The notes under the pieces: model-generated | Told to the model about the DNA's origin: nothing | Seen by the model: only the letters and a program-made list of their open reading frames with translations | Database searches by the model: none | Made by a program: the position numbers and the translations under genes | Shown here: one piece after another, positions 51,650 to 58,107 of the stretch | How the letters are laid out: every line of letters begins with the position of its first letter | Numbering within the stretch: position 1 is the stretch's first letter | Virus record (IMG/VR): IMGVR_UViG_3300032053_000002 | Coordinates: 1 to 64,000 of that record | Length of the DNA: 64,000 bases | Strand: one strand, 5' to 3'

Positions 51650-52406
51650 ACCACACTTTTAATTCATAACCACGTCGCTTCACGGCATCCCATTTCAGTT
51701 TATCATTTTCTCTTTCATAACCTTTTGTCTCGATATAATAAAAATTTTCATCGTTATCAAGAACTTTAAAATCTAAAAGATAAAAATGCTCTTTTCCATC
51801 AACTCCAATATATTTTATTCGATCATTTGTATATTCCCAATCTTTTATATCTCCGTCCCGTTTCCACCTATCAAGTATTTTACAAGTTCTTAGTTCATAC
51901 GTTCCTTGTACTTTTATTTTTCCATGCGTTGTTTCTACTTCCACCCATCTAGTTATTCCGCCAAAAACCGGTTTTCCATTTTCATACGATTTTTTTACCG
52001 CAAGAGATAAATTTTTTCTCGTTTCATTGCTCACAAAATGTCCCATTAAGGCTTCGCGTATTTTTACTAATGTTTCTTCAGAATAAACATTCGTTCTTCC
52101 CCTATTCCACGGAACTTGCCCTCTATGATTATCACTTATTTTTTTTAATCTTTCGTCCGTTTCTTTAGTCAGTCCTTTATTCCACGGAATTCTACCTTTA
52201 TTCCACGAAATTCTACCCTTATTTCTTTCCATTAATGTATTACTAACTTTTTCGTTTATTTCTTGCCGCATCTCTTTCGTTGAATAACCTCGAGCGCATT
52301 TTTTTGAGCAAAATGTTCCATCCGAATATTTACTATACTTTACAACTTCATTTATATTACAATATTTACATTTCATTTTATTTGTAATTTCCCACTTATT
52401 TTGCAC
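51594..52406 (-). CDS. Putative homing endonuclease (NUMOD-type repeats + TnsA-like PD-(D/E)XK)
   Basis: CKYC..FCSKKC; WNKG repeats; YE...Y.LDF...YIETKG; probable start 52376. Confidence 0.75.
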   Translation of the reverse strand: MQNKWEITNKMKCKYCNINEVVKYSKYSDGTFCSKKCARGYSTKEMRQEINEKVSNTLMERNKGRISWNKGRIPWNKGLTKETDERLKKISDNHRGQVPWNRGRTNVYSEETLVKIREALMGHFVSNETRKNLSLAVKKSYENGKPVFGGITRWVEVETTHGKIKVQGTYELRTCKILDRWKRDGDIKDWEYTNDRIKYIGVDGKEHFYLLDFKVLDNDENFYYIETKGYERENDKLKWDAVKRRGYELKVWFEEDIKKYEFIKRQNTVE

Positions 52407-52452
52407 TCTCGGCAGGATTTGAACCCGCCCTATTCCGTTGCTCTACGAGAGC
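52404..52452 (-). ncRNA. 49-nt tRNA minihelix-like RNA (acceptor stem + T-arm only)
   Basis: GCUCUCG-UAGAGCAACGGAAUAGG-GCGGG-UUCAAAU-CCUGC-CGAGAGU-G-CAA. Confidence 0.6.
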
Positions 52453-52814: not shown

Positions 52815-52895
52815 TATCCACGGCAGGATTTGAACCTGCGTTTTCAGCTCCGTACTACGGCTAATGCGTTCGTAGCGCATCCCGGCTACGTGGAC
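52815..52895 (-). tRNA. Non-canonical D-armless tRNA-like RNA, anticodon ACG (Arg), long variable arm
   Basis: GUCCACG/CGUGGAU acceptor; 8-nt UAGCCGGG linker; AUGCG-CUACGAA-CGCAU; 24-nt variable region; GCAGG-UUCAAAU-CCUGC; ends A-CUA. Confidence 0.75.
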
Positions 52896-52901
52896 ATATA
52901 T

Positions 52902-53123
52902 TTATTCTTTTACTTCCAACTCCGCTGCCGCTTCGGCTTTCACTTTCTTCTTCGGTTTATATTCAATTTCATTTCCACCGCTCAGTATTTCGCCGCACTT
53001 TGGGCAGGTTAGCCAAAAAAACAGTTCACCCTCTTCCTTTTTAGGAACAACCGACTTAAATTGATAATTCCTATCACAAGTCTCGCAATAAAAACCTCGT
53101 TTACTAGCCATTATATTCTCCAC
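52902..53123 (-). CDS. Small Zn-ribbon protein
   Basis: CETC...CPKCG. Confidence 0.55.
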   Translation of the reverse strand: MENIMASKRGFYCETCDRNYQFKSVVPKKEEGELFFWLTCPKCGEILSGGNEIEYKPKKKVKAEAAAELEVKE

Positions 53124-53138
53124 TTTTTATATGTACCG

Positions 53139-53167
53139 AATATACAAAAAAATAGAATCATAGTCAA
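53139..53167 (-). promoter_or_regulatory. sigma70-type early promoter (tRNA-like RNA unit)
   Basis: TTGACT-N17-TATATT. Confidence 0.8.
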
Positions 53168-57340: not shown

Positions 57341-58107
57341 TCCACTAACTCTCCGTCTTTTTTATAGATTATATTTTTTAGATAGTCGCGATTGTCGGCG
57401 AAAAACGGAACGTCATTATCAAGTACCCACTTTGACCTGAGAACTTTTTGCCCATCTTCGGTAACAATCTCATACATATATTTTTTTACGGTGAATCCCC
57501 ACTTCTGAGCACTGGGTAATTCTTCCCACTTTTCACCTTTACCTTTTAATTCACACATTTCTCTTAACTCGTCAGAATTTTTATTCAGTAATACTTTTTG
57601 ACTAAACATAGAATGCGCAAGAGATTGGATAGAATTTCTCTTTGCGTCAAATTGTCGCCAGATGAAAATGTTTTCCACTTCGTTTAGCGGAACATTAAAT
57701 ACCCGACAATCAAAGTATGCCAGTGAGTTGGGAAGCGCAATCACACTGTTGAAATTGGCAGTAAAAATAGATGCGATTACAGAAGAAACCTTTTGAATAT
57801 TTCCGCCAAACCACACCTGAGACTTTTCTCCACCCCAGACTCCACCACCCATTAAAAATGTCGCTTCATCTGATTGACTATATGCCATAGCGACAGACCC
57901 AATTTCTTTACAAGTTTCAACCGCCGCGATTCCCATTGCAGTAGACAACGCCCAATCAAACGGCCGTTTGAACTCATTTTTTCCAACCCAGGTATGAAAC
58001 GCTTTACCATCCACTCGAACAAAAATCGGAAGGTTCACGTCTAAATAGATTCTACTTTTTTCTTCGTACGCTTTTAGACGGTTTCCCATCTCGTCTTTTT
58101 TCTTCAT
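57337..58107 (-). CDS. tRNA-His guanylyltransferase Thg1-like 3'-5' polymerase
   Basis: RVDGKAFH; YSQSDE; FDCR; WRQ.DA.RNS. Confidence 0.92.
   Translation of the reverse strand: MKKKDEMGNRLKAYEEKSRIYLDVNLPIFVRVDGKAFHTWVGKNEFKRPFDWALSTAMGIAAVETCKEIGSVAMAYSQSDEATFLMGGGVWGGEKSQVWFGGNIQKVSSVIASIFTANFNSVIALPNSLAYFDCRVFNVPLNEVENIFIWRQFDAKRNSIQSLAHSMFSQKVLLNKNSDELREMCELKGKGEKWEELPSAQKWGFTVKKYMYEIVTEDGQKVLRSKWVLDNDVPFFADNRDYLKNIIYKKDGELVE

Follow-up and report, generated by a model that had tools for sequence, protein, structure and literature searches.

A probable tRNA-Arg(ACG) with a rearranged D-arm, from a phage-specific class of non-cloverleaf tRNA genes

The locus

The stretch of DNA analyzed here, referred to as the window, comprises the first 64 kb (64,000 nt) of a 292,723-bp IMG/VR virus record with a G+C content of about 35% and an estimated completeness of 91%. 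DNA of this jumbo phage is present in sediment metagenomes, and the sequencing runs listed for it are DNA runs only. An odd tRNA gene of 81 nt, including the discriminator A73, lies on the minus strand at 52815-52895. Position p of the RNA corresponds to window coordinate 52896-p. The parts of the gene, together with a promoter match upstream, are as follows; the assignments to a D-like stem are predictions from the family alignments described below.

52815..52895, minus strand: whole gene, non-canonical tRNA-Arg(ACG) (sequence; Rfam tRNA model 37.4 bits; class model R1 80 bits)
52889..52895, minus strand: 5' strand of the acceptor stem, G1-G7, pairing with 52816-52822, G1.U72 being a wobble pair
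52883..52888, minus strand: U8, A9 and G10, C11, C12, G13, the last four being the predicted 5' strand of a split D-like stem (pair counts)
52864..52880, minus strand: anticodon arm with a 5-bp stem and a 7-nt loop (five covarying pairs)
52858..52859, minus strand: C37 and G38, predicted first 3' segment of the D-like stem, pairing with G13 and C12 (compensatory changes from G-C to A-U, C-G and U-A at 13-37)
52849..52857, minus strand: 9-nt bulge UAGUACGGA with the putative D-loop signature, equivalents of A14, R15, G18G19 and A20 (conservation, and covariation of the R15 equivalent with the Y48 equivalent)
52847..52848, minus strand: G48 and C49, predicted second 3' segment of the D-like stem, pairing with C11 and G10 (10-49 and 11-48 covary)
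52840..52846, minus strand: linker UGAAAAC, standing for position 26 and variable loop 44-48 (its final base and the R15 equivalent covary)
52823..52839, minus strand: T arm GCAGG/UUCAAAU/CCUGC (five pairs, four covarying; GGTTCRANYC motif present)
52815..52822, minus strand: 3' strand of the acceptor stem (52816-52822) and discriminator A (52815) (sequence)
53139..53167, minus strand: tentative sigma-70-like promoter match TTGACT-17-TATATT (10 of 12 positions)

The acceptor stem, GUCCACG/CGUGGAU, has 7 bp with G1.U72 included. It is joined to the anticodon stem by 8 nt (UAGCCGGG), which consist of U8-A9 and the six bases GCCGGG. The anticodon arm is AUGCG/CUACGAA/CGCAU, with ACG at 52873-52871, and 24 nt separate the anticodon stem from the T stem. 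The 9-nt bulge of this copy contains one extra nucleotide, and its R15 equivalent is G with C as the partner. CCA is not encoded; the discriminator A is followed by CUA, which begins the trailer CUAAUU. A preliminary description of the gene, made from its sequence, had listed the 7-bp acceptor stem, U8-A9, the 5-bp/7-nt ACG arm and the T arm, and all of these are present. It had also pointed to an A-CUA end shared with the tmRNA, and the tmRNA of this phage (window 36140-36489, minus strand; tag GNYSLAYAA), which likewise lacks an encoded CCA, does end A-CUAAUU.

On the minus strand the promoter match is followed by a 73-aa zinc-ribbon-like ORF (52902-53123) and then by the tRNA gene. The upstream promoter proposed earlier is borne out tentatively by the sigma-70-like match at 53167-53139, at 10 of 12 positions, sites of this type being no commoner in the region than in shuffled sequences.

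It had been expected that tRNA finders would miss the gene or give it a low score. ARAGORN does not call it, and Rfam RF00005 gives it a weak pass, 37.4 bits against a gathering score of 29. The RF00005 alignment is a wrong cloverleaf, in which the anticodon hairpin is taken as an oversized D-arm. In an Rfam scan of the window copy with E-values up to 10, tRNA was the sole credible family.

A tRNA-like minihelix of 49 nt is found 360 nt downstream of the gene, between two small ORFs (window 52404-52452, minus strand). It consists of a 7-bp acceptor stem and a T arm joined by 17 nt, and has neither a D arm nor an anticodon arm. Its T arm is almost identical to that of the tRNA-Arg(ACG) gene; it scores 22.3 bits with the Rfam tRNA model and 25.1 bits with R1. 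It may be a deletion derivative or a mimic of substrates of the CCA enzyme or RNase P.

The arginine tRNAs of the phage

In the whole record ARAGORN finds 45 tRNAs and the tmRNA, by which all amino acids are served but arginine. The Rfam tRNA model adds a few sites that ARAGORN misses or miscalls, and four of these have the odd layout.

Record 52815-52895, minus strand: ACG copy, loop CUACGAA
Record 83000-83079, minus strand: UCG copy, loop CUUCGAA
Record 77423-77502, minus strand: UCU copy, loop CUUCUAA, miscalled Asp(atc) by ARAGORN
Record 113018-113097, minus strand: CCU copy, loop UUCCUAA

By their anticodons these four would read all six Arg codons, and they are the sole Arg tRNAs of the phage. 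The acceptor stem is nearly identical in three of the four genes, which suggests duplication inside the genome. A search of the phage genome for ArgRS, a CCA-adding enzyme and RtcB found none of the three. One frame of 266 aa contains a Thg1-like 3'-5' nucleotidyltransferase domain (window 57688-58083, minus strand), and another of 572 aa contains a TROVE/Ro60 homolog (63997-64938, minus strand) that extends beyond the end of the window. When the 3-kb neighbourhood of the gene was compared with GenBank phages by megablast, no match was obtained.

Two other tRNAs of the record are unusual in their anticodon loops. One (74629-74702, minus strand) has the anticodon CUA, is of the amber suppressor type and is labelled 'Pyl' by ARAGORN; the other (81704-81779, minus strand) has an anticodon loop of 8 nt (caga). 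Both are hints that this phage may read stop codons or decode quadruplets.

Distribution of the class

IMG/VR was scanned with a pattern consisting of the conserved non-helical bases, with the anticodon left as NNN. The pattern matched at least 117 viral contigs. Among the 122 matches listed, 121 were complete tRNA frames, every one with an Arg anticodon (TCT 73, ACG 30, TCG 14, CCT 4). Among the 121 frames there are 89 distinct sequences, 42 of them with an encoded CCA. When the scan was limited to CCT, it gave the four loci already known from the NNN scan, so the latter is probably close to complete. Variant scans, in which positions 13 and 37 were relaxed and complementarity was not required, added 34 new distinct sequences after filtering for acceptor and anticodon-stem pairing and for the T-loop motif; Arg anticodons were again universal (34/34). 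Where CCA is lacking among the 89 distinct sequences, the first base of the trailer is nearly always C (CTA, CAA, CTT, CAT).

In prokaryotes (185,579 species, one genome each) the pattern matched just 12 stretches; every one is on a MAG contig of 3-79 kb, plausibly phage DNA caught up in the binning. The class is specific to phages. Its cultured carriers are five jumbo phages of Brevundimonas and a large group of Vibrio phages of 114 kb, in which the copies lie in tRNA clusters with no annotation beneath them. According to the class model, Vibrio phage D419 (OZ195672, gene at 65929-66008) and Brevundimonas phage vB_BpoS-Kabachok (ON529852, 265039-265117) have exactly one copy each, both with ACG and an encoded CCA and both missed by ARAGORN. 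The locus tags of D419 skip from TRNA_0009 to TRNA_0011 exactly at the unannotated class member; curation may have removed a tRNA that had been predicted there. A typical UCU member had no match among GenBank phages by BLAST. ARAGORN calls overlapped 11 of 106 class members and only 4 were called Arg, so that about 90% were missed.

The preliminary description had allowed for the case that homologs possess a normal D-arm, the layout then being a private deletion. The odd layout is instead shared by more than 100 phage contigs, with strong covariation.

Structure from covariation

The first alignment, of 86 distinct sequences, was analyzed by mutual information; several of its conserved columns had been imposed by the search pattern. 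The acceptor, anticodon and T stems all emerge from this analysis. In the same 86 sequences there is a long-range pair, 10-49 (GC 54, AU 30, GT 2), and a second pair, 41-56 (AT 77, GC 5, GG 4). Position 56 is the base 5' of the T stem, which is position 48 of a normal tRNA, and position 41 falls within a conserved run U-A-R-N-N-G-G-A, which was read as A14, R15, G18G19 and A20. R15 is the Levitt partner of Y48 in tRNA.

A covariance model built from related phages had been suggested earlier as a check on the gene. In the model constructed here, R1, the pattern-fixed columns were set as unpaired because they had been fixed by the search pattern. R1 separates the class from canonical tRNAs: class members score 45-99 bits and the window copy 80 bits, compared with about 43 bits or less for canonical tRNAs in the same loci. 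The features of the gene are far beyond chance.

In the 34 variants, positions 13 and 37 are always paired, as A-U, C-G or U-A. For 126 sequences, 95.8% of cells are paired and the covariation score is 0.852; shuffles give 0.235, with none of 500 reaching 0.852, and slid partners give at most 0.145. The pair counts, which do not represent phylogenetically independent events, are given below for the 126 sequences.

Pair 10-49: GC 66, AU 52, UA 4, CG 1, GU 1
Pair 11-48: CG 110, UA 9, AU 2, UG 2
Pair 12-38: CG 125, UG 1
Pair 13-37: GC 85, AU 25, CG 13, UA 2
Pair 14-36: two thirds paired, with four Watson-Crick types

The Levitt-like pair between the equivalents of R15 and Y48 is AU in 109 cases and GC in 12. 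All seven pairs of the acceptor stem have compensatory changes in the family, with 98% of cells paired. U33 is present in 108 of the 109 Arg-type members and A37 in 109/109; the signature positions U, A, R, G, G and A are conserved in all or nearly all of them, and the A20 equivalent, the base after GG, is A in 109/109. The earlier argument that the intact stems of the window copy reflect selection is strengthened by these comparisons, since compensatory changes are found in every helix across the family.

The pair counts provide good support for a 4-bp D-like stem, in which positions 10-13 would pair with 37-38 and 48-49. Equally well supported by the alignments is the nesting of the anticodon arm within this stem, where it appears to substitute for the D-loop. 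The 9-nt bulge would then split the stem's 3' strand, and the D-loop signature would have been shifted to lie 3' of the anticodon arm, a placement that is again well supported. From there the equivalents of A14, R15, G18G19 and A20 may make tertiary contacts. With the anticodon arm inside the D-arm, standard tRNA finders would be expected to miss the gene.

The preliminary description had seen a D-armless tRNA with a hairpin in the variable arm. It was right in that no D hairpin precedes the anticodon arm, and it is amended by covariation, which indicates a split 4-bp D-like stem. That the D-armless fold is nevertheless the true one, with an 8-nt connector in place of a D-stem and a 24-nt variable hairpin as in mitochondria, is rather unlikely. 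The window copy can form a 4-bp hairpin, CCGU/ACGG, and the nearest-neighbour energy favours it, -24.5 kcal/mol compared with -18.2 kcal/mol for the split stem, in a model that ignores tertiary contacts and on a copy whose extra base lengthens the hairpin. The pairs of this hairpin are possible in 83-86% of the cells of the family. However, compensatory change is essentially lacking at pairs 36-46, 37-45 and 38-44, where 1 of 378 cells carries a double change; each of these pairs leaves 16-32 cells unpaired, and in neither of two alignments is the hairpin supported by covariation, whereas the competing pairs 13-37, 10-49 and 11-48 covary. The 13 variants with C13-G37 are telling: the hairpin pair 37-45 becomes G.G in these, while 13-37 remains Watson-Crick. 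The local hairpin would also bury the invariant GG. Folding of the window copy by itself gives a minimum free energy of -27.8 kcal/mol and a structure that is not tRNA-like, with a z of only -2.1, and single-sequence folding is therefore uninformative.

Two features vary within the class. G1.U72, which is unusual among bacterial-type tRNAs, is the commonest first acceptor pair (59/126). Some members of 89-91 nt have an additional insertion or hairpin of 9-11 nt in the linker that precedes the T arm, where type II tRNAs have their variable arm (L001:1173-1262, L035:13235-13323, L064:679-767, L067:6590-6680, L112:2274-2364 and L195:7170-7260, the L numbers denoting loci).

A sister class with Ile anticodons

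R1 also found weaker matches with the same nested plan and Ile anticodons. A pattern for the Ile form that was blind to the anticodon matched 11 viral contigs (GAT 10, TAT 1), with A73 in all. The phage has an Ile-form copy of its own (record 79919-79995, minus strand; GAU), which ARAGORN misses, and further loci are L135-L143, L089 and L114. The Ile form retains the inner two pairs only (CC with GG), and those of its members that were inspected have U following GG. One weak match, at L114:2702, possibly has the anticodon CAU.

Relationship to other tRNAs and tRNA-like RNAs

The class shares with canonical tRNA-Arg (RF00005) the 7-bp acceptor stem, the 5-bp T arm with its GTTCRANYC loop and the 5-bp/7-nt anticodon arm, together with U33, A37, Arg anticodons, N73, a CCA that is often encoded, and a location in phage tRNA clusters. 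Residues like U8, A14, R15-Y48, G18G19 and A20 are also common to both. Members of the class exceed the Rfam threshold and possess the acceptor stem and T arm, the anticodon arm and the core residues of tRNAs; what they lack is the D hairpin. In canonical tRNA-Arg this hairpin, 10-13 with 22-25, lies between the acceptor stem and the anticodon arm, whereas in the class the D-loop signature is placed 3' of the anticodon arm, in the bulge between the predicted 3' halves of the stem.

D-armless mitochondrial tRNAs, such as metazoan mt-tRNA-Ser(AGY) and those of nematodes, resemble the class in having a short connector for the D hairpin, and both are missed by tRNA finders. The mitochondrial molecules are short and have lost the contacts between D-loop and T-loop. 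In contrast, members of the class are 79-81 nt long, have GG and a canonical T loop, appear to keep a 4-bp D-like stem by long-range pairing, and occur in phages of bacteria. The class is not assigned to the mitochondrial type because the stem and the elbow residues are kept. Type II tRNAs (Leu, Ser, Tyr, Sec) and allo-tRNAs also have a long stretch between the anticodon arm and the T arm, to which a few members of the class add a hairpin. The D-arm of these tRNAs is normal, and the acceptor/T stems of allo-tRNAs are 8/4 or 9/3, whereas the class has 7/5 stems and Arg or Ile identity. The 7/5 stems and a variable hairpin unsupported by covariation set the class apart from both. The full anticodon arm distinguishes it from tRNA mimics (the tmRNA domain, YrlA, TLS and skipping-rope RNAs), and none of the Rfam models of tRNA-like mimics passes, with E-values up to 10.

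A catalogue of csRNAs from IMG/VR, published in 2023, contains tRNA-like motifs that only occasionally overlap ARAGORN calls, and one of them, DNAVirus_1850, overlapped a tRNA-Asp call once (PMC10690425). Compared by description only, this is reminiscent of the Asp(atc) call that ARAGORN makes on the UCU paralog of the present phage. The catalogue assigns neither an anticodon nor an amino acid, nor any such structure (PMC10690425), and it may hold the motif of the class under a number. Loss of the D-arm has been regarded as an oddity of animal mitochondria (PMC7609411). Phages go unmentioned in a 2020 review on non-canonical tRNAs, and a 2024 paper describes all known bacterial tRNAs as canonical. 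No description of the layout was found in the open-access literature. A preprint on bacterial tRNA mimics was considered as a prior description; it concerns other RNAs. The class appears to be undescribed and to be systematically missed by annotation.

Function

The anticodons of class members are informative with respect to function. At 16 loci with two to four members, an anticodon is never repeated. At 32 loci that also have canonical Arg tRNAs, the overlap in anticodon between the two kinds is 9, compared with 15.6 +/- 2.6 expected (P = 0.006). Paralogs with unrepeated anticodons that tend to complement the canonical Arg tRNAs favour decoding, since a decoy or an amino acid donor would need neither several isoacceptors nor complementarity. 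The main identity elements for E. coli ArgRS are A20 and C35. All anticodons of the class are NCG or YCU, and A follows GG, which fits the Arg identity rules (C35, G36 or U36, A20) if, as we infer, the base after GG is equivalent to A20. Judged from these sequences, the RNA would be processed, charged and used in decoding, and a decoding function is likely. We consider it probable that the gene encodes a functional tRNA-Arg(ACG) belonging to a phage-specific, structurally rewired class of tRNAs.

The preliminary description had offered a remodelled decoding tRNA or a decoy as alternatives, and the former is by far the better fit, the phage having these as its sole Arg tRNAs and their anticodons being unrepeated. 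A non-decoding mimic would be a decoy, sponge or substrate of a tRNA-directed enzyme, such as an anticodon nuclease, Ro60 or a Thg1-like repair enzyme, with the Arg-type anticodon loop kept only for recognition by that enzyme or by ArgRS. The TROVE/Ro60 homolog and the Thg1-like protein encoded by the phage could be cited for this reading, as could the 9 cases in which a class member stands beside a canonical Arg tRNA with the identical anticodon, and a non-canonical core that may not suit the ribosome. It is nonetheless improbable. Four isoacceptors tile the six Arg codons exactly in a phage that otherwise has no Arg tRNA and in which the other 19 amino acids are fully served; paralog anticodons are unrepeated and overlap those of canonical Arg tRNAs less than expected; and the acceptor stem, T arm, U33, A37 and discriminator are all retained, with CCA encoded in about half of the members. 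Ro60 and Thg1 had been singled out earlier as possible partners. Both genes exist here, but nothing links the RNA to them in particular, and most carriers of the class are other phages, which may or may not encode Ro60 or Thg1, with the gene in an ordinary tRNA cluster.

C35, an identity element of E. coli ArgRS, is common to all Arg anticodons, and the restriction to Arg could therefore reflect charging alone. This would be the case if the RNA were an arginine donor for a non-ribosomal reaction, charged without decoding and serving an Arg-tRNA-dependent transferase. One isoacceptor would be enough for such a purpose, yet phages keep two to four with anticodons that are all different, and Ile uses the same architecture; the donor reading is very improbable. 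Failure of ARAGORN and a low Rfam score would also be expected of a decaying pseudogene, or of a gene whose product becomes a canonical cloverleaf after splicing or permutation. More than 150 distinct sequences share the layout, and every helix has undergone compensatory changes, which speaks against decay. As for permutation, the gene already begins and ends with the acceptor strands. Removal of the anticodon hairpin by splicing would leave no anticodon arm, and on inspection re-ordering of the segments never gives a normal D-arm. There is hardly any likelihood of either origin. An intron-containing or permuted gene had been considered as a candidate and was rejected on the same inspection, no re-ordering of segments yielding a cloverleaf.

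For a decoding tRNA-Arg(ACG), the following pathway is proposed. The gene would be transcribed together with the small upstream ORF, and the tRNA would be released by host RNase P and 3' processing. As the phage has no CCA-adding enzyme of its own, that of the host would add CCA. TadA of the host, for which the anticodon arm would suffice, would deaminate A34, and host ArgRS would charge the tRNA by way of C35, G36 and the A that invariably follows GG, the presumed A20 equivalent. On the ribosome it would read CGU, CGC and CGA, the remaining Arg codons being covered by the UCG, UCU and CCU paralogs.

The persistence of such a fold may be due to escape from a nuclease directed at tRNA-Arg, or from some other factor of the host by which the canonical D-arm and core are recognized; this is speculative and is put forward with low confidence. 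More broadly, and as a doubtful possibility, phages may carry a second tRNA fold for Arg and, in the sister class, Ile, which is accepted by bacterial ArgRS and IleRS, EF-Tu and ribosomes and which is kept by escaping an attack, host or phage-inflicted, on canonical Arg and Ile tRNAs.

Significance

A conserved and covarying class of non-cloverleaf tRNAs is present in phages of bacteria, beyond the animal mitochondria. Inventories of phage tRNAs, and statements that a phage has no tRNA-Arg, are biased as a result of the ARAGORN misses and of the blanks in GenBank entries for Vibrio and Brevundimonas phages. If these RNAs are charged and decode, the bacterial translation apparatus tolerates a tRNA with a re-threaded core, and the class, if this is true, would be a natural scaffold for the design of orthogonal tRNAs. 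That only Arg and Ile are served in this way is a hint of some specific selective pressure in the conflict between phage and host, which is testable in culturable phage-host pairs.
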